A stretch of DNA of 64,000 nt. It comes from Lepidodermella squamata (taxonomy: Eukaryota > Animalia > Gastrotricha). Below, piece after piece: positions 7,603 to 19,785 of this stretch. Location: positions 496,001 to 560,000 of the forward strand of contig JBLDXI010000009.1 of assembly GCA_047495785.1 (NCBI GenBank), in the 5' to 3' direction. The position numbers and the translations under genes are program-made. Under the pieces are notes generated by a model that was not told the DNA's origin, did no database searches, and worked only from the letters and a program-made list of their open reading frames with translations. Within the stretch, counting starts at the first letter, position 1. Every line of letters starts with the position of its first letter.

Positions 7603-10600
7603 TCACTCCTTTGTGTAGTATTCTCCGCATTCAGAGCAGAACTCTTCGTCACCACAGCTGTCGGAATTCGTCGACCCAGCGATGGACATGCGCAGAGATG
7701 CGGTTGGCACCCACACCTTGACAGCGCGATCGGCCGCCGCCGAGAACATGCGGCATTCGGTTATATTGGCGTTATCCGCATTCGGGGCGATGATCGCCAG
7801 CCCGGTAACGGCGTCCTTGTGCCGGTCGAGCACCTGCGCCGTCACCATCTCGCGGTCGTTGGCGTGCCAGTGCCACACGCGAATCGTCGAGTCGTCGCTG
7901 CCCGTCAGAATGCACAGCGGGTAGGTTGTGCCCAGCGAGGCGATGCAATTGACCGCCGCCGTGTGACCTGGCGCAAAACAAAAAATCAATCATCGACCGC
8001 GGCATCACAGCCAGCGTAATATTTATGCAGCGAACAAGACCGGCAAATAACAATAAAGAAAACAATGCGTTAAGAAAGCCCGCAAATTTTTTCTGCAATA
8101 CTGCGATCAATTATTAATAGTATTGTATTTTGATCGATATCTGCCACATTTACACGCGCACAAATACCGACCAATAAACCCGAGCCACGTTTTGCAAAGC
8201 AAGCCTTAAAACGCGCCGTCATTTACTTTGGTTTTTCTAGCGTAAAAAATGGTTCCTCAACACTACAAGCGATTCTTCTTTTTCGTGGCCCTCATCGCCT
8301 ATTCGATGATTACGCCTCGGATTGTCGAGGCGCAGGACGGTGAGGATGGCGAGATCGCCGACAGCGGAGAGGGCGGTAAAAAGGACGACGAAGAGTTGTT
8401 CGAGTTTAAAACGCCCGATATGACGGAAGAGGAGCAACACAGCCAGCACATGCCTGTTCATATGGAGTGCGACGGGTGTAAGCTCATAGCACGACTGGTA
8501 ACGTTATAACCTGTTATAAGCAATTTTATCCTATTTATTTCATACATTTTCGCAGCTTGACCAATCATTTTACAAGGCAACTGAGCGAAGGTCGAAAAGC
8601 AAGAAAATTCTGACGGAATCGGAAGTTATCGAAATCGTCGAGAAAGTTTGCGAAGACAAATTCGAAGAGTAAAATTTATCGACTTGAGGCTAAAAAATCC
8701 ACCTTAAACCGTTTTTTCCCAGTTATGGAGCCAAGGAAGTTGGTGGTGTTTTAAGGCTGACTGGTCCTTTCACTGAGGTGGAGAATATTCCAGGTGTAAC
8801 TTCAGGCGGTGGAAAATGGCCTAACCGCATCCGCCAGTTGTGCTCTCGTTACTGGGACGAATTAGGGGACGATGGTTTGTTTTCAACTCTTTTCTTATTT
8901 TACCTCCATTTTGCTCACTTTTTTTCAATAGAAATCTACACGGGGTGGAGAGACGACCCTGGCAGTTTCACAAAGTACTTGTGCCATGCTCCTCACCGGC
9001 CGCGCGATGCGTGCTACAAAAGCCGGCTAGACAGCAAGCACATGCCCGACGATTTGAAGCAGGACTTCACGAAACACATGCACGAGGAAGACCAACAGCG
9101 CCAGAAACGCATGGCCGACGTTTCGAAAGAGAACGCGAAGCTCAGAAAAGAGCAAACAGGACGTGATGAACTTTAAAGCATGTGCACACAAAAACACTAT
9201 TAGATGCAGCATCAACTGCCTGTTCATAAATATGTTTACCCGAAAACTCGCAATAAAACCGACACAAAAAACGCAAATTTACCTAACAGAGCGTAGGCAA
9301 ATGCGTACGATGAAGCGGGCGATGTACGGCGGTAGTGCTGCACTGTTGCCCTCTCGAAAATGTACAACTTTCCATTGGAGCCGCCGGCAATTATGAGCCG
9401 ATTTCCGGCTGCCATGGCCAAACATGTGATAGCTATATCGGCCAATTCAAACGGAATCGACAGAGATCGAGACTTGAAAGAAAAACAAGATACAAAAATG
9501 TGAAAAATTGCTTTGCTGTGACAAACCTGACGCCATGTAATATGCGTCTCGTGGCATTGTTTCGCCAGAACGCAAATTGACCGAAACCCCACAGCGCAGA
9601 ATAGGAACATTGAGTCGTCGTCAAAAATGACCGAGTGAACTTTAGTGCTTTTCATGTGACCAATCGACCCGTTGATATGGCGGCGGGTTTGGCTGTCAGA
9701 ATCATCGGAATCTCCCGAACTCTCCTCGAGCTCTTCTAGAAAAGTGTGGTGGAATATGATAGACGCAACGCCCTGGCTATTCAGGCCTAGCACGGTGAGC
9801 TCAGAGCCGCGGCCGATGGCTATCATGAAGCGATCTCGAGATGCCGCCATGCAATGTACGGGTTGCGTCGAGGCGTGAGAAATCGTGTTAGTCCGAGGAT
9901 GGCCGTCGCCGCTATTTCCGGCTTGTATCTGCAACCCGGATACGTACAATCTATTGCTTTCAGGCCAAACTTGGAGCATGGACAGGGGAGAGCCAGATGA
10001 ATGCTGAGCGCTGATTTTAAACGCAGCCAACCGGCCATCGGACAGCCCGGCGTACAAGTGTGAGTACTGGCGGCAGGTTACGACCGCAAGAGTTCGAGCA
10101 TGGACTACGGCGGTCGACGGGACAACCGAGTCGTCGAATAAACTGATTTCGTGAGCGAGTGTGACGGATTGCATGTGACGGGGCGGGTCGCCAATTTGCC
10201 ACAGTTCGATCGTACCAGCTGCAGTTCCTATGATGAGCCAGTCGATTCCGAAAGCGGCTATAGGTCCGGCTAGGTTGTCGAAAGTTCCCGCGCAGCTATT
10301 TTGATTAGTATCAGACATGAGGTTATCAATTGTTGAATTAATAATTACTTGAACATCATGAGGTTTTCAATTGCTGACGAGTCGGATTGGCGGCTTCGAA
10401 GCCGGCTCGTTCCAGATTGGCCCCGTTCGAGGTAAGTTAGCCGGGTTTCGAGACGGCACAGATCGTTATCAATCGCACGAAGCGAATGACCAACAGCATG
10501 TTGGACTGAAAATCACATTTCCATCAAATGCTGTCAAATACCCGTTAAGTGATACCAACATTTCTCTAAAGCTTCCTCGAGGCGGCTTAGTCTTGTCAAA

Positions 10601-10870
10601 ATGACGTTTTCATTAGGCGACGGGTCTTTCAAAGTAACACCAGTTGAGTGGTCGATCAACGACGGTAAGTTGCTTGCCGTCAACCTGGCATTTGGAGGTA
10701 GTTGCTGCGTAAAAATTAATATTGTTAAAATTTGCCATTTCGTGATGCAAGCACTGCAAGCTACCTTGGCGACATACTATTCTAATCTCGTCACTAATCG
10801 GAAGGCTAGATTCTGAGTGACAGTCGCTGAAAACTTCTTCGCCTTTGTCATCATCTGCTTTTTGACTCAT
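7603..10870 (-). CDS. WD40-repeat protein with an N-terminal coiled coil; multi-exon, last intron 9282-7968
   Basis: ORF fragments 10613-10870, 9236-10318 and 7603-7989 join through GT-AG introns. The phase-1 junction TTA G|GT CAC rebuilds YALLGHTAAVNCIA...LTGSDDSTIRVW, a canonical WD repeat. A second repeat reads RHKDAVTGL...SAAADRAVKVW. Confidence 0.8.
8249..9176 (+). CDS. MZB1: MZB1/pERp1-like (canopy/saposin-related) ER luminal protein, 4 exons
   Basis: Signal peptide, then EEQHSQHMPVHMECDGC (CxxC), YGAKEVGGVLRLTGP and GGKWPNRIRQLCSRYWDELGDDEIY, all paralleling MZB1. C-terminal RDEL ER-retention signal. AATAAA at 9252-9257. Confidence 0.85.
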
Positions 10871-11026
10871 CTAACAAATGACTTTTTCATTAACATAAAA
10901 ATAAAGTTAAATGATTAAAGCAAGCAATCATTCAAAACAATTTATTCAAGAGGCGAATGAACCGGAAACGATTTTTTATCACAATACTGATGAGGATGAG
11001 AAATACTAGGTGAAAAACGGGCGATG

Positions 11027-11796
11027 CTAGGCAGTGCTGCCGAAAAGTTCTCGAGCAAAGGCGCAGTGCCGCAAACAAATATCGGCCGGGGTGTCGCCTT
11101 GGGCGTTGCGAAGGTCGGTGCGCAGATGAGGCCAGCGCAGCAAGAAGGCGATGGTTCGAGGAGTTTGGGCCTGTACGCAGGCCACGTGCAACGGGGTGTT
11201 GCCGCCCTCGGTCAGGGCGTTTGGCTCGGCGCCGAGGTTCAATAGCAATTCGCACATCGCGTAATGGTCCCAATGCGCGGCCGAGTGCAGCGGAGTCCAA
11301 CCGTCATTCGTCCGCGCCATCACATCGGCGCCCAGGGATACCAGCAAATCCGCCGTTTGGCAATGGCCACCGTAGGCCGCTCGGTGCAATGGCGTGTACC
11401 CGTCACAATCCTTCGCGTTGACAAGCTCAGGCCTTTCAGACACCAATTTATTTATTATACCGCTTTTTCCGTTCTCCGCGGCCCATAGAATCTTCTTCAC
11501 TGGATCATCTGAAATATTTCGACATAGTATATGAAAGCCGAAACTGCAATAACAATTTTACCGTTGATTTCCTGTTCGCTGTAATGCTCGACGTCTTCCT
11601 CGTCCATCTCCCAATGGCTTGCGTACTTATTTGGCTGGCCACGCTTGTCCTCTAGGATTTTCCGCATCAGCTCGTCGTTTTCAGCCTTCGCAATTTGAAG
11701 CTGCGTGTCGTCGCAAACCGCGTCGACTTCTTCCGCTTCAGCCAACTGAGCCTCGGCAAACGACTCTACAGAGTCCATTTCTTCGTCTTTTTCCAT
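11027..11796 (-). CDS. ANKRD49: Ankyrin repeat domain-containing protein 49 (exons 11796-11562 and about 11508-11027)
   Basis: Acidic N-terminus, then DPVKKILWAAENG...KDCDGYTPLHRAAYGGH...DGWTPLHSAAHWD...TPLHVA. This follows the ANKRD49 repeat pattern (DPSRLLLWAAEK, YTPLHRAAY, GWTPLHSA). Confidence 0.85.
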
Positions 11797-11899
11797 TTTA
11801 AACGAGTAAAATGCTACCCTATGAAGTAGAAAAAATACAGTAGGGTGAAATCCGAATGCCATATGACAATAAAAAAAAATGACGAAAAACATGAGATCT

Positions 11900-12543
11900 C
11901 TATGATTTCCGAGATTTTCGATTGCGACTTTTTCTCGGCCCCTTCCGTCGTCGCTTCCTTGGCTTTTCACGCGCTATTCTGACCATGACGCTCTACAAGA
12001 GGAACAAATGGATGCATTGGTCGGCGAAATCAGATGTAATATAACCTGTTCGTCGAGGAAATTGACGAGCTGTTGCTCTGAACACTCGACATCGCTCAAC
12101 GTTTGCACTTTCGCGTATATTTCATTGAAATGAAGCGGCTTGTACTGCAAAATATCCATGTAAAGCTGCCGATCCGATCGAATGAAGGCAGCGATTTTCT
12201 CCTCAGCGTCATCAGATAACGCGGTTTCGCGCTGCTTCTTTGACAGTTTCCTAGGCGACGCGTCTTCAGCAATTTCTGCTTCCCATTCTTCAAAAAATTC
12301 GCGAACAGCAGCATCTTCGTAGTCTTCATCACCTGCTGTCGGTGACGCCGCAGGACTGGCTGCTGCGCATTTATCGGCCGACTCAGAGTTGTTTGTATCG
12401 CCTTTGGCCACTGCCGCTAATTTAGCATCTTTGTTTCGCGGCAATCGGTAACGATACCATTTGGGGATATAACCAGCTCTTCGGCGCCGCTTGTTGCTGG
12501 ACCGTTCCCTGCTCGAACCAGCAATCGCTTCAGGTAAATCCAT
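11900..12543 (-). CDS. Stand-alone SLX4 C-terminal (SLX1-binding/CCD) domain protein, a partial SLX4 duplicate; 2 exons
   Basis: EKIAAFIRSDRQLYMDILQYKPL...QQLVNFLDEQ is 36/52 identical (hand count) to the C-terminal domain of the adjacent SLX4. It has the same phase-0 intron after DEQ. The last exon reads SVMVRIAREKPRKRRRKGPRKSRNRKSRKS*. Confidence 0.8.
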
Positions 12544-12692
12544 CGACTTAAATTTTCATGCTCAAGAAACTAATCAAGAAGAAATCAGCTTACAGCGATT
12601 TTCAAACAAGACTTAAAAATGTGAGCTTCATATTAATATCAATAATTCGGCTAATAAAATCGATATATTGCAAAAAAATTCAAATGATGCGA

Positions 12693-15600
12693 TTAATTTT
12701 GCGCGGCGGACTTTTTGTTCTGCCTCGGCTTCTTTTCGACGGGAGGCGGCGGAGGTGGCCGGTGAGACTTGCCGGGTGCGAGGCGGAACGTAATGCACTA
12801 ATCACGGATTTGAAATATTAATCGAAATCATTACAGCAAAAGAGCTAACCTGCTCGTCGAGAAAATCGACCAACTGCTGCTTTGAACAAGCAAAATTGCC
12901 AACTTTTCGGACCTTGGTGTAGATGTCTTTAAATAGCAACGGTTTGTACTGCAACACGTCGATGTAAAGCTCACGATCGCTGCGAATGAACGCAGCAATC
13001 TTTTCTGTAAATTCATCGCCGGATAACACGATTTTCTTCTGCTTCTTAGCCGCTTTTTTAGTCGCGGCTTGGGACACAGTCATAGCTTGAGATTGCGTGA
13101 AAAATTCGCCAATGTCGTCATCGCCATCATCCTCCGCTTCGTCCTCGATTTCGTCGAGCAGCGACAGTGCGTTCGGCTCAATCGTCATTTCAGCTTCGTC
13201 GTCGTCTTCTTCAATCTCCGAATCAGAAGATGACGAAGATGATTCAGAAAATTTTTGTCTACAACGAGCTTTCCAATGAACAGGCTTCGCATTTGCAGCT
13301 GTAGTCGGCTTCTTCTTTTTCGTCACATCAGGCTGCGTCACAACTGCTGGTTGTTGGGTCGACGAGGAAGTCGACGGCTGGTCACTTTTCGATTGGATAG
13401 GCTTCAAAACTGAGTGAATTTCTTTCAGTTTCAGCACCATGTGCTTCTTCGGCAATTTCCGCACGCCGTACTTGCTCAGCAGCTTCGCAAGGCTGGGTGT
13501 AGCCATTTGGCTATACGGCGGCGTAGTTTTCTGGCGAAGCATGTTACCAACAGGAGTTGCAGGTGTCGCGTTCTCTTTCACGTGGTTCTGCTTCTTAGCC
13601 GCATGTCCGACAGAAGTGAGGCCTACAAGCGAAACTCGAGGTCGCGTTTTGCCACCAGCAGCCAGTTTCGACCCAGCGCCATTTTTCCGACTCAAAACTG
13701 ATATTTCGCCAACAGCAGCGGGGGCAGGCGAAGGAGATTTCCGCAAATTATCAAATTCAGCAATCAAATTGTTTTCCTCTTCCGTTATTACAAGACCTCC
13801 CTCCGATAACGGAATTTCCTCTGTGAAGCAATGGTCATAGTAGTTGTAATTTTCAAGATCAGCATAATCGTCGTATTGCTGAATCGGCGGCAAGTCATCA
13901 TCGTTGTTTTCACAATGGTTCTCTTTCGAATCCATTTCGCTATTTCCAACTGATGCGGGATCGAAATTATCGACAATTTGAGGTGGATCGTCCTCAAGCG
14001 CCAATAGTTCAGGCTCAGATTTTTCATCGGCGTCAACAGCGTCAAAGCTTCTCAAGGAATCATTCGACTCGTTCTTCGGAGATTCAGAAGACAGAACAAT
14101 CGGTGACATTGGTTCTCTGCGAAGCGGCAAAGCCGGTGTAGCGGCATTTTTGAAATACGATATAGGACTAGCATCGTCATTCGCAACAGCTAGAATAAGC
14201 GATTCGCTTAGCTCAGGCGGCGGCGGCTCGGAGTCACTAACTTCCTCGTCGGATGCAGGATCTTCATAAGACTCGATAGCATTCCTGATTTCATCAGTAA
14301 ATTCTGACGTCTCAAAACAACCGCCGTAAATAAAATCAAGGAAAGACTCGATAAATTTTGACGAGAATAAAGACAGCCGGGCTATAGTTAGGTTTTTATT
14401 CGGCGAGGTCAACGATTTCCGCGAAATAAGGCCAGGGCATTGAGCGAATAGTATCAGACGATGGGCAGGAATGAGATCACCATCGGCGGATAACAACCGA
14501 ACATCACAGGTCGATTTGTCACAACGAAGTTGAAAGAAATTCGCCAACAACTGGTTTCGACGCTCTGGGTCACTTTGCGTCGACTTATCAACTAGCGCAT
14601 TCTCCGTCTGCGAGCTTTGATCATCGACGGTAAGCATGGTTTGAGAAGCCTCGTCAAAAGTTGACACCTCTGTTTGAGAATCTGAATCTTTCAAAGACTC
14701 CACCGAATAGCTAGTAGTACTGGGTAGTTCAAATGATGAATTATTGGCAGTTAACGGCGGTGCATAAGTGCTTGTAATTATAACATCGGTGTCTCGATCG
14801 AAATTCGATGCAATATGCATAGTAGAGTCATGCGTAATTTCCAACGACTGAGGAATCAGAGTTTCGTTCGATTCATCAACACCGCTGATCGACTCATTTT
14901 TGCGAATTTCAATCGATTTCTTCGGCGAAATACGAGGTTTATCGGTAATGTCGATTCCTAATTCGAAATCACAAGTGTCGATGTGAAATTCTTCCGGCAT
15001 TCCGAAAATCGTATTCGATGATTTGATTTCCTCGATCAGTTTTTCGGGTGAAGAGCAGGCCAAACGAAACAAACGGGATGCAACTTCTCCCGAGGCCAAC
15101 TTACTAGCTACAAGGACTTTGAACGTTTTGCGACCAGTAATCGCTTCGAACCGCTCGTTGATAAGTTCGAGAAGACGTATTTGTGCTTCGGCTGGGTCGC
15201 GGGAAGCCGCTGCCGAAATCGCCTGTTCGATCGTTGCTTGTAATTTCGGCTTTTTCGACGGAGCACGGCCATCTTTTTCGCAATTCTCAGCGATGGAAAC
15301 TATCGGCAAGTGACTAACGTGAGTTTCAACCACTGAAGCCGATAAAGCCACGGCGAGCTGTAACTGCTCATCCTCGTAAGAGGCCGGCTGTTCGAAAAAT
15401 TTACCCGGCCGTTTCTTGCCCGAAGCTGGTTTGCTAGTGGGGGCTGAAGGAGGCGGAGGCGGTGGCATCTCCACTTGCAGAGTCATCTGCTTCTTGGAGA
15501 GTTCCAACAAGAGATCAGGGGCAACATTGTACTTTTTGGCGCATTGCTTCAAATGAGGCGCATAAGACCGGTCAGTTTTTATTACCCGCCCACAAATGGG

Positions 15601-16092
15601 GCAATAAGGCAACACCGTTCCAGTTGCTTCGGCTATGGTCGTCTGCATAAATTGAATTTAGTAATTTTTCAGAGAAATCAAACGATTTATTACCGAAGAA
15701 TCAGCTGTAAGATTCGAGTCCGACGTTGAACTTGAAGGCCGTTCGTCCTTATCAATAGCAGTTTTGCTGTTAGACGGCGATGACTTGACGGTGATGAAAT
15801 CCGTAATCGGTCGAACTTTTCCAATTGATTTAGCCGCTTTAGCCTTGGCAGCTCTTGCTTTCATACACTGCGCAAAATGATCAGCATATTTCGACTCGAG
15901 TAGCGCAACATTGCATAGGGCGCAGTTTCTAGAGGCGGCTTCTTCCGATTTCGCTGGTGCGGGTGCGGCAGGTTTTGAAACCGGCACGGACTCGGACTTG
16001 GCCAACTTCGCGGCAACCTGCTTCAGCAACGGTCGAACTGATTCGTCCTTGAAGTCATCCAAGCTATCGCGGCGACTGTCTCTGCTGCTCAT
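12693..16092 (-). CDS. SLX4: Structure-specific endonuclease scaffold SLX4 (exons 16092-15694, 15642-12850, 12797-12693)
   Basis: Two UBZ-like fingers (CALC...H...C; CPICG...HLKQCAK), MLR-like EQLQLAVALSAS, BTB (DVRLLSADGDLIPAHRLIL..QCP...FLDFIYGG), SIM-like PIVLSS, SAP (PPYSQMATPSL..LLSKYGVRKLPKKHMVLKLKEIH) and CCD ending FLDEQ|CITF. Confidence 0.93.
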
Positions 16093-16282
16093 TCGGCATT
16101 AACATTAATAAATTATTCCTACTGGACAATCAAAATAACTCAAATAATTGCGCAAATTATTACTTCAAAGCAGATTAAAATGTTGAGCCGAATCACGTTG
16201 TGGTTGTAAATAATATGATCAAGAGATTCATCTATTCGAAATACCGGATAATCAAAGGCAGTTATTTCAGTTTCATCACAAT

Positions 16283-18630
16283 CTAAAATTGCGGCCGGCG
16301 CTTGGCTTGCGGTTGACCAGTCGCAGATCGAGCTGCAGTGAGATCAATGAAACCGCCTCCGCCACTAGCCCCGCCTGTCAGGGTAGTCGGAAGGCGACGC
16401 TGAGAAGCCTGCGAAACGTTGCCCACCGCTTGTGACGTGTTCATCGACTCGTTAGCTCCGCCCACAAACATGTTCCTGATATCAGACTGAGCCCTGTTAA
16501 ACAAGCAAATGAAATTCGAAAAATTAAACAAGTCTGCCCAACTTACTGAGACGAGCGAGTAGAAGCGGCGGTCGTGCGATTCGTTGCGGTTGTTCGTTTA
16601 GGAGGTGGAGGAGGTTCGTCCGCCATCATATCGTCGTCCTCAGGTGGATCAAAGGGATCGATATCGACTTCACGCGCCGCCGCCGCTGCAGCACCGCGGC
16701 CACGCCCTCGGCCTCGGCCTCGAGTGGTGGTCGGAGCTGGAGAAGCGGCCGCAGCTCGACTCCCTCGGCCACCTCGGCTACCACGGCCGCCGCGTGATCC
16801 ACGACCACCCCGCTTGCCCTTAGCGGCAGTCGTCACTTCCATGGCGTCTTCATCATCATCGCCAGCTAAATCATTCTCGTCATTATCATCATCTGGAGTT
16901 GTCCGTCGAGCAGCCGGTTTGACATCTTCGTCGTCATCATCCTGCTCATCCTGTGGCGCTCTCTGGTAACCTCGAGCTTCGCGATTTCGCTGCAGCATTC
17001 CCAACACCTCGTTTTCCTCGTCAGTTCGCCCTTTCCGCTCGGCGTGGAATCGACGAATGAGTCGATCAACGTCGCTTTCATCGTCGAAATCAACGTCAAT
17101 GTCAGGATTTGCGTTGACATAGTCCATCATTCGACCAATTTGATGCTTCATTAAATTTCCAATGGAATCTTTGTCTTCCTTATCGACAAAAGCCTCAAGT
17201 GCGCGCCTGAGACCGATTTCAGACAACACGCGCAATTTATCCATCTTATTATCTGGCGCTTCCATCAATTCGGAAATGATGTCCTCCAAGCGATGTGAAT
17301 TCAATTGCGATAAATTGATATTCAACGCATCCATACCTTCCAGATCGTCATCTCCATCAGTCGTATCACCACCGCCGCTGATTAAACGGCGCTTATGGAA
17401 CAATAAAATGTCCTTAGGATTCGCGACTGTATCCGCGAAGTGGCAACCGAATCGAGCGGGGAAAAGCACTGGATATCCACCGGATGCGTCCACCTTAAGG
17501 CGAATGAGAGGCTTCGTCGGTTGACGAGGATCGCCGCTGCGTTCAGCCTTAGCTCGAGTCAACACGCTCTTGATAATTTCCAAACATTTCTTCTCAATCT
17601 TCTCCTGACAACGCGGATCGTCGGGGGCGATGTTCGTCTTCGAAAGTTCGAGATGTTCAACGTAGAGTTGGCGCACAGTTTTCAATGGCAGTGGGGTCAA
17701 ACTGAAGTTTTTCCCGCGAACTTGCAGCAAAGCGCAATGTTTCTGGGCTGCCTCGCCATCCGCCAGTGACGTTGCTACGGTTGAACCGACCTGGGTGACG
17801 TAAAAATCACGAGCCGAGTTGCGCTGGTACGGCTGGCTGCCCAACATCGACTCGTGTTCATGGCCCCAAAATACCAGATCGATGAAGTCGTCGAGAAATG
17901 ACTCGGGGATGAAATTTTTCGCACCATGCTTCGATCGGTTTTGGTGGATGCACAACAGGTTGAAAAAGTCGTCAGCTCGTTCCTTAGGCCTGAACAGCGT
18001 TACGCGCTTTTGAAGAAACATGCGATGCAAACGCTCATCCCTCATTGCACCGATGCCGTATATCGCCAGTAATGTGGCCCCTTTCCGCATGAGAAGCGGT
18101 GCAGACTCAACGGCGTCTGTCGCCCTGGTTTTCCCGAAGAAATTTACCAAACCAGCCGCAGCCAAAAGATCCAAGGCACATAGACCGCCGTGGCCAGACG
18201 GATCGTCGTGATTGCCGTGGATGCTGAATACTGGGATCGCAACGTTTAAATTAGGATCTTCGTAATTTAAACGCAGGTAGGAATCGCTGTGAGACAACGT
18301 AGCTTCTCGGCTGCTCAAAAACTCGAAAGCAGCCGGCGTCTCCCCCAGACAGTATTTCCTGAGCAACTCGATGCATTTGTACTGAGCTGTCCGCGACGGC
18401 TTGTTGTCGTGGTACAAATCGCCTCCAAGCAGGATGAAATCAACCTGGTGCTGAACTGCGTATTCGAGGCACTCCTCGAAAGCTAGAAAAGAATCGTTTT
18501 CGCGTTCGGCGTCCTTTTCGCCGAATCCCAAGTGGATATCGGTTGCTAACAGAATCTTGAACGTATTTTCTTCATCATTTTCATCTGCGTCGACGTTATA
18601 TGACGACTGGTCGGCATAAGAAGCCTCCAT
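16283..18630 (-). CDS. MRE11: Double-strand break repair nuclease MRE11 (exons 18630-16547, 16493-16283)
   Basis: Phosphoesterase motifs ATDIHLG, GGDLYHDNKPS, IHGNHDDP, HQNR and WGHEH; capping domain PLIRLKVD...ANPKDIL; RGG-rich GAR motif. Confidence 0.98.
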
Positions 18631-18720
18631 AAATGAATATAAAAACCCTTGAAAAAATCATTATTGCCGTTTTAATACAATATAATGTTGAACGAATTGG
18701 AAGCGCAAGGAACGAGTTTT

Positions 18721-19785
<1,065 letters not shown>

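Follow-up and report, generated by a model that had tools for sequence, protein, structure and literature searches.

A stretch of 64,000 nucleotides from the gastrotrich Lepidodermella squamata (contig JBLDXI010000009.1, positions 496,001 to 560,000 of the forward strand; the window throughout) contains, directly behind a full-length gene for the nuclease scaffold SLX4, a second, small gene that encodes only the SLX4 C-terminal domain (CCD), the part that binds and activates the nuclease SLX1. Our analysis establishes the structure of this gene and the identity of its domain, its transcription and splicing, the age of the copy, the constraint upon it and the retention of residues at the SLX1 interface. 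With a probability of roughly 0.5, we read it as a functional, lineage-specific partial paralog of SLX4 that would supply the SLX1-binding and SLX1-activating domain in the nucleus without the scaffold; the nuclear localisation and the binding and activation of SLX1 are predictions from the protein sequence. The SLX4 scaffold stabilises and activates SLX1 and coordinates it with MUS81-EME1 and XPF-ERCC1, and SLX1 is not known to act in animals apart from this large protein.

Structure and domain content of the small gene

The window sequence, the list of open reading frames (ORFs) and scripted splicing give a product of 196 aa from two exons on the minus strand, 12543..12046 and 11992..11900, with the following features:

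12046..12543, minus strand: exon 1, an ORF of 166 codons from the ATG at 12543 to GAC GAA CAG (DEQ) at 12046, covered over its whole length by RNA-derived contigs of sequencing run X1
11993..12045, minus strand: intron of 53 nt, GT..AG, phase 0, skipped exactly by an X1 contig and read through by a DNA contig of run X2
11900..11992, minus strand: exon 2, 30 codons (SVMVRIAREKP and a basic tail) and the stop TAG at 11902..11900, lying under a spliced X1 contig (11849-11992)
12046..12201, minus strand: CCD core, aa 115-166, Pfam PF09494, with helices that include LYMDILQYKP and QQLVNFLDEQ
12478..12495, minus strand: N-terminal basic tract NKRRRR, aa 17-22, resembling a nuclear localisation signal (NLS), from the translation; it lies within a 71-aa N-terminus dissimilar to SLX4
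11903..11971, minus strand: C-terminal Lys/Arg-rich tail, aa 174-196, from the translation
12556..12562, minus strand: an AG (12562/12561) preceded by a pyrimidine run and followed by an in-frame TGA (12558..12556), which lies five codons 5' of the ATG, read from the sequence
12544..12692, minus strand: spacer of 149 nt from the SLX4 stop to the small-gene ATG, free of X1 (RNA) contigs and bridged by X2 DNA contig 12546-12999

The single Pfam family in the product is PF09494 (Slx4), matched at aa 115-166 with E 2.1e-9 over profile positions 2-54 of 60; the score of 37.7 bits lies above the curated gathering cutoff of 24.8, and the remaining profile positions are encoded by exon 2. Pfam returned no BTB, UBZ, zinc finger or any further family, and neither BLASTP nor Pfam detected a counterpart of the SAP-like motif of SLX4 (YSQMATPSLAKLL..RKLPKK), the similarity to SLX4 beginning only at about aa 72. 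A first, sequence-only reading of this DNA had proposed a two-exon gene of roughly 196 aa containing the CCD alone, flanked by basic NLS-like tracts and devoid of UBZ, MLR, BTB and SAP regions, and the ORFs, splicing, translation, Pfam and BLASTP results agree with it on each of these points. When a hidden Markov model (HMM) built from eight CCDs was run against the six-frame translation of the window, it found exactly two CCDs in the 64 kb, each with E about 1e-33. Since the sole nearby AG upstream of the ATG is directly followed by the in-frame TGA, an SLX4 exon joined there cannot enter the small-gene frame. The small gene is a separate cistron with its own start.

Transcription and splicing

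We compared two public sequencing runs with positions 10900-16400 of the window (5,501 nt). X2 is a DNA run from 2024 and probably the source of the assembly; X1 is a 2015 run from another study with a differently labelled organism, mostly 95-100% identical to the window. The X2 contigs cover the whole region evenly at a depth of about 100-150, introns included, and one of them (12546-12999) extends across the spacer that separates SLX4 from the small gene. An alternative-haplotype X2 contig over 12187-12450 carries 16 differences, and the one haplotype indel seen in the small gene is a 3-nt, in-frame insertion (GCT after 12488). In X1, a contig of 272 nt (depth 15) joins 11992 to 12046 exactly, with CT..AC ends on the plus strand, and this is the junction at which the sequence-only reading had suggested looking. 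Two further introns are skipped exactly in X1, again with CT..AC on the plus strand: 11508/11562 in the neighbouring ANKRD49-like gene and 15642/15694 in SLX4. X1 contigs cover the small-gene coding sequence fully, at depths like those of SLX4, and as this evidence consists of contigs, the depth does not convey 5' end, strand or expression level. No X1 contig lies in the spacer at 12556-12739, and no spliced leader was seen on the small gene. Two haplotypes and two samples thus contain the small gene, and its transcription and splicing follow the prediction.

These data bear directly on the possibility that the duplication is an assembly artefact, as the sequence-only reading had allowed, or that the small exons are alternative 3' exons of SLX4 instead of a separate gene. 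Either idea could draw on the tandem position, the shared strand and intron phase, the short spacer of 149 nt and the lack of any X1 contig seen across the last SLX4 intron. We regard both as extremely improbable: 45% of aligned residues differ between the copies, whose introns are unalignable, X2 depth is even across a spacer bridged by independent DNA contigs, the gene recurs in a second haplotype and in a second sample, the in-frame TGA after the only upstream AG blocks SLX4 from reading into the small-gene frame, and no SLX4-to-small-gene joint occurs among the joints listed for the X1 and X2 contigs.

The same contigs reveal patchy heterozygosity in X2, with alternative contigs at roughly half the depth that differ by 6-14% in short blocks (12187-12450, 13534-13609, 13801-13899 and 15727-15770) and identical stretches between them. 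In X1, several contigs connect opposite strands over distances of about 45-115 nt, at 12446-12491, 14381-14563, 14996-15091 and 15737-16096, and are probably hairpin-like assembly or library artefacts. In one of these opposite-strand contigs, small-gene codons 41-54 are more divergent, four of the changes being non-synonymous and one synonymous.

Comparison with the neighbouring full-length SLX4

The adjacent SLX4 gene encodes 1,098 aa in three exons on the minus strand (16092..15694, 15642..12850 and 12797..12693):

15694..16092, minus strand: SLX4 exon 1, 133 codons, an ORF; the X1 joint 15642/15694 defines the 51-nt intron that follows
12850..15642, minus strand: SLX4 exon 2, 931 codons, with a zinc-finger-like CPICG..HLKQC, the BTB domain, the SAP-like motif and the CCD up to DEQ
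12693..12797, minus strand: last SLX4 exon (CITFRLAPGKSHRPPPPPPVEKKPR...), stop at 12695..12693, preceded by a 52-nt intron (12798..12849); the homologous exon of a relative lies at L001:12600-12707

In Pfam, the large SLX4 ORF matches BTB (E 1.1e-6) and Slx4 (E 2.9e-6), with an additional zinc-finger-like match; its Slx4 score of 27.6 bits is lower than the 37.7 bits of the small gene. BLASTP aligns exon 1 of the small gene to this ORF with 47/85 identical residues (E 9e-24), and the homology spans the small protein from about aa 72 to its end, leaving a 71-aa N-terminus that does not resemble SLX4. Within the CCD core, 36 of 52 residues are identical, and different codons are used at 18 of those 36. 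The last helix differs by a single residue (QQLVNFLDEQ in the small gene, QQLVDFLDEQ in SLX4), and directly after DEQ both genes have a phase-0 intron, of 53 nt in the small gene and 52 nt in SLX4; the two introns cannot be aligned and have only their splice sites in common. After the junction SLX4 continues with CITFRLAPGKSHRPPPPPP... (CITFRLAPGKS...) and the small gene with SVMVRIAREKPRKRRRK... (SVMVRIAREKP...), and the tails beyond are alignable only as low-complexity basic sequence. The core identity with its many synonymous differences, the shared intron position and the replacement of CITF by SVMV had all been noticed in the sequence-only reading, and the translations and codon comparison of both genes uphold them. 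A retrogene origin of the copy is ruled out by the retained intron.

The tail that follows CITF or CVTF in the full-length SLX4 of both species (window 12693-12797; L001:12600-12707) is GKSHRPPPPPPVEKKPR, with a conserved proline run. The small gene and arthropod-like and fish SLX4s have a Lys/Arg-rich tail instead. In the full-length SLX4 of this lineage, the proline tail seems to be derived.

Age of the copy and selection on the CCD

To judge from the pattern of substitutions, the small-gene copy is old and its CCD is under purifying selection, as synonymous saturation, a low omega and neutral simulation all indicate. In a Nei-Gojobori comparison of the small gene with SLX4 over the 52-codon core, the proportions of synonymous (pS) and non-synonymous (pN) differences were 0.73 and 0.18, with omega about 0.08; the core and the next five codons gave a bootstrap median omega of 0.14 (95% range 0.06-0.31), and the linker at aa 73-114 was looser (omega about 0.33). 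The same codon is used at 28 of 58 aligned identical residues against 22.9 expected at saturation from draws on the codon usage of the window (P = 0.10), so that synonymous sites are indistinguishable from saturation. When neutral decay of an SLX4 copy was simulated, the mean core identity had fallen to 18/52 at 0.5 substitutions per site; at that divergence or more, none of 20,000 runs kept 36/52 (P < 5e-5) and 5% or fewer kept 86 codons free of stops. The view taken in the sequence-only reading, of an old partial duplicate under selection, is borne out by the retained intron, the synonymous saturation, an omega of about 0.1 and the exclusion of neutrality.

Two other approaches were set aside. 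Dating the duplication by synonymous divergence (dS) is ruled out by the saturation and by the difference in composition between the two species, whose SLX4 orthologs give a pS of 0.94-0.99. A pN/pS test between haplotypes was dropped since the haplotypes are identical over 11554-12216, non-coding sequence included, which makes the missing CCD variation uninformative on constraint.

Could the copy nevertheless be a transcribed relic, that is, a decaying and functionless partial duplicate that is transcribed as a passenger of a dense gene cluster? Its absence from the syntenic locus of the relative (see below) would fit, as would the N-terminal 110 residues, which vary much between haplotypes and samples with several non-synonymous differences, and the lack of any small-gene homolog in 1.84 billion representative proteins. 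The 196-codon ORF, its start and both its splice sites, however, are intact despite the synonymous saturation, the neutral simulations exclude the observed identity, the sole haplotype indel seen is in frame and the Pfam score exceeds that of the parental copy. A relic is already disfavoured on these grounds and we consider it improbable.

The SLX1 interface

Both C1536R and the loss of Cys1536-Thr1541 prevent mouse SLX4 from binding SLX1 and leave SLX1 unstable (PMC3808987), and the six-residue span fits CITFTT of fish SLX4s. The sequence-only reading had described this Cys-to-Arg effect correctly in connection with the SVMV of the small gene, where the position is occupied by Ser167; the Ser itself gives no sign of lost binding. 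In Candida glabrata Slx4 the corresponding residue is Gly716, where the last CCD helix ends, and the Arg effect has been attributed to a steric clash (PMC4407285). Gly also stands at this position in two SLX4s retrieved here (P0002 and P0004). Because the effect of Arg is steric and Gly is found in the yeast and in two other SLX4s, Ser is no argument for lost binding, and we take Ser167 to be a tolerated small residue from which a loss of SLX1 binding is not predicted.

The two regions of the CCD that form the interface with SLX1 are helix 2 and helix 5 (PMC8599992), and the corresponding regions are the best-conserved parts of the small gene. In C. glabrata, Tyr679 and Phe681 of helix 2 stack on and insert into Slx1 (PMC4407285); a profile alignment to 4xlg_B places them at Leu131 and Tyr133 of ILQYKP, identical in both paralogs. 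Substitutions in the small gene cluster between the interface regions, at aa 147-156, where several basic residues have become neutral or acidic. An AlphaFold2 model of aa 83-166 has four helices (mean pLDDT, the per-residue confidence score, 63.4), and its top Foldseek match in the Protein Data Bank (PDB) is 4zdt_B, the Schizosaccharomyces pombe Slx4 CCD bound to the Slx1 RING domain (template modelling (TM) score 0.62, root-mean-square deviation 2.1 Å, E 1.5), with 7cq3_B of Saccharomyces cerevisiae at TM 0.56. Such a fold is what solved CCDs, small globular bundles of short helices, would lead one to expect, though the statistics behind the match are weak. By sequence, phmmer of exon 1 against PDB sequences gave no match, and a profile search reached 4xlg_B and 4zdt_B only weakly (E 0.029-0.14).

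The sequence-only reading had offered three roles, an activator, a decoy and a domain with a new partner. Conservation of this kind would equally suit a competitive decoy, with the small protein titrating SLX1 away from SLX4, for instance in certain tissues or stages, uncoupling it from MUS81-EME1 and XPF-ERCC1 and damping Holliday-junction resolution. One CCD binds one SLX1 (PMC4407285), so that the paralogs would have to compete for a single site, and Holliday-junction resolution in mouse cells depends on the presence of both SLX1 and MUS81 on SLX4 (PMC3808987). Set against this, the CCD alone binds Slx1 1:1 and displaces the auto-inhibitory Slx1 homodimer, and the resulting complex cleaves branched DNA in vitro (PMC4407285; PMC8599992); CCD-bound SLX1 is active and not silenced, so a pure decoy would free a promiscuous nuclease. 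We hold the decoy to be a doubtful though credible alternative.

A changed partner is unlikely too. Here the CCD would have been retargeted to another RING/GIY-YIG protein or to an unrelated ligand, an idea in keeping with the fast, asymmetric evolution of the core (16 unique changes in the small gene, 2 in SLX4), the charge-reversing cluster at aa 147-156 and the exchange of CITF for SVMV; the residues that contact SLX1 in the solved complexes are nevertheless the best-conserved part of the protein. In one quite improbable version, the stand-alone CCD would be a regulatory subunit for candidate SLX1-type GIY-YIG nucleases fused to Helitron-like transposases, licensing or restraining transposon cutting. 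No Helitron-like element lies near the small gene within the window, which also speaks against a new partner.

Relatives, gene cluster and origin of the copy

Data from relatives come from one species, represented by three metagenome contigs from three assemblies, L001 (21 kb) and L003 among them. MRE11 is 79% identical between the window and this relative, the next best being mollusc and brachiopod sequences at about 50-53%; an exact-match look-up of the window's MRE11 protein found no record of it. The window and both named contigs share a same-strand gene cluster:

window 7603-19785, L001:6287-15152 and L003:202-7025, same strand: conserved cluster adh_short/PECR > MRE11 > SLX4 > ANKRD49-like > WD40-like, with spacers of about 80-450 nt

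The extra CCD gene of the window is the sole difference in content between these clusters. In the relative (L001 and L003), only 81 nt separate the last SLX4 exon (CVTFRLAPGKSHRPPPPPP...) from the start codon of the ANKRD49-like gene; the interval between SLX4 and the ANKRD49-like gene measures 896 nt in the window and contains the small gene. The HMM finds one CCD only in the 21-kb L001, and no second. On this comparison, the small gene is lineage-restricted, being without a copy at the syntenic locus of the sole available relative. Of the findings that the sequence-only reading had named as grounds against it (missing expression, dN/dS near 1, disablements in relatives or an assembly artefact), none was encountered.

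An exhaustive phmmer search over 1.84 billion representative proteins returned four matches, and the small gene itself has no homolog among them. Full-length SLX4s account for three of the four, and the closest of these (P0001) comes from the metagenome relative. The fourth, P0004 (131 aa), was considered as a CCD-only gene and rejected: it is the terminal exon of a multi-exon SLX4, since ORFs with SAP-like and zinc-finger-like motifs precede it in its contig. That contig (L002:2791-6396, a Logan contig from an unrelated organism) has the terminal CCD exon called as a separate protein, with Gly at the Cys1536 position (GISYIF), and gene-call fragments like it will mimic CCD-only proteins in any database survey. 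When exon 1 was searched by word index against candidate proteins of 91-290 aa, there was no match, the self match being missing as well, and JGI metagenome contigs scanned with a single protein and then with a 3-sequence alignment gave none.

A maximum-likelihood tree was built from eight CCDs (63 columns). In it, this lineage's three sequences group together (support 85/87) and the small gene falls outside the pair of SLX4 orthologs (support 92/90). Constraining the small gene and the SLX4 of the window together costs 3.8 log-likelihood units (approximately unbiased (AU) test, p = 0.084). As the small gene lies outside the ortholog pair, the duplication is probably older than the separation of the two species, the relative having lost the gene; alternatively, the duplication may be later and the copy may then have evolved fast.

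Elsewhere in the cluster, the C-terminus of MRE11 (window 16546-16900, minus strand) is a long tail of low complexity in which acidic runs accompany a Gly-Arg repeat (GRGSRGG repeated, then GRGRGRGRG). Vertebrate MRE11 has a glycine-arginine-rich motif, which this tail resembles.

A candidate scaffold-free SLX1 activator

The history that we propose for the small gene begins with a tandem, DNA-level duplication that would have placed the last ~125-130 SLX4 codons, with the final intron, in the spacer between SLX4 and the ANKRD49-like gene. The landing site would have been the conserved, operon-like same-strand cluster, in which the fragment perhaps needed no promoter of its own. The copy would then have acquired its own ATG and a new basic, probably disordered N-terminus of 71 residues, and would since have been retained under purifying selection. 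Its 196-aa product would amount to a CCD between two NLS-like basic tracts, which are predicted to send it to the nucleus. There the CCD could use helix 2 (ILQYKP) and its last helix to dock in the cleft that separates the RING domain of SLX1 from its GIY-YIG domain, and the 1:1 SLX1-CCD heterodimer, which in fungi suffices to break the auto-inhibited SLX1 homodimer, would be an active branched-DNA nuclease. The outcome would be a stabilised pool of active SLX1, untethered from XPF-ERCC1, from MUS81-EME1 and from the BTB, UBZ and SAP modules of full-length SLX4.

Several observations weigh against this proposal. The RNA label of X1 is a guess, and its RNA nature rests on the three intron-skipping joints. 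Unique changes in the core number 16 for the small gene, 2 for SLX4 and 9 for the relative, and several of the 16 reverse charge (RKVGNFACSK to QTLSDVECSE), a possible sign of a changed partner. The exchange of CITF for SVMV falls in a loop whose yeast counterpart touches the Slx1 nuclease domain. The structural model is of moderate confidence and leaves out the exon-2 residues, and a Foldseek E of 1.5 is weak for a small domain. Finally, the gene is missing at the syntenic site of the relative, and is thus dispensable in that lineage.

If the proposal is right, the small gene would indicate that SLX1 activation and scaffold assembly can be uncoupled in evolution, and it would be a natural reagent for asking in vivo whether free SLX1-CCD is useful or dangerous. 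The locus also illustrates a route of gene birth in which a 3' gene fragment is duplicated inside an operon-like cluster, perhaps without the need for its own promoter. The scope of these statements is one small gene from a poorly sampled invertebrate lineage, seen against one outgroup species, with a function predicted from its sequence.

Comparison with known systems

In our search of the open-access literature, which was limited, no published description of an SLX4 gene duplication or of a truncated SLX4 paralog was found. The ESM Atlas contains clusters of short PF09494 proteins (157, 175 and 213 aa), mostly from Basidiomycota and Chlorophyta, which could be natural CCD-only proteins or truncated gene models. 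The sequence-only reading knew of no described equivalent in animals; we found no published one, and with such clusters in fungi and green algae a claim of uniqueness holds at most for animals.

Like full-length SLX4 (also BTBD12, MUS312 or HIM-18), the small gene has the PF09494 CCD with the ILQYKP and LV.FLDEQ helices and a phase-0 intron after DEQ, and its basic tail after the CCD is like that of arthropod-like and fish SLX4s. Unlike full-length SLX4, it encodes 196 instead of 1,098 aa and is without zinc-finger or UBZ-like motifs, MLR, BTB and SAP, and hence (by its domain content) without docking sites for XPF-ERCC1 or MUS81-EME1 and without a dimerisation module. It further differs in having SVMV for CITF and a more acidic loop at aa 147-156, and in contrast to the SLX4 scaffold orthologs it has no one-to-one syntenic copy in the relative.

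A review gives SAP plus CCD as the minimal architecture, present throughout fungi and animals, and names S. pombe Slx4, with 418 aa, as the smallest studied (PMC8599992). Both this protein and the small gene product are short members of the Slx4 family built around the CCD; S. pombe Slx4, however, keeps its SAP domain and is the sole Slx4 of its organism, whereas the small gene is without SAP and stands beside a complete SLX4. In the literature, 'mini-SLX4' denotes an engineered fragment of mouse SLX4 (residues 1-758) that binds XPF-ERCC1 and has no CCD (PMC4017094). This fragment and the small gene are both minimal SLX4 pieces serving one nuclease, drawn from opposite halves of the protein, and the name is better avoided for the small gene to prevent confusion with the N-terminal fragment. 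A further likeness is to the engineered CCD fragments of C. glabrata (Slx4 CCD3, 4XLG), S. pombe (4ZDT) and S. cerevisiae (7CQ3), which likewise consist of the CCD alone, although the fungal CCDs 4xlg_B and 4zdt_B are only weakly similar to it in sequence. Those fragments are laboratory truncations, whereas the small gene is natural, spliced and selected, with its own start and its own NLS-like tracts.

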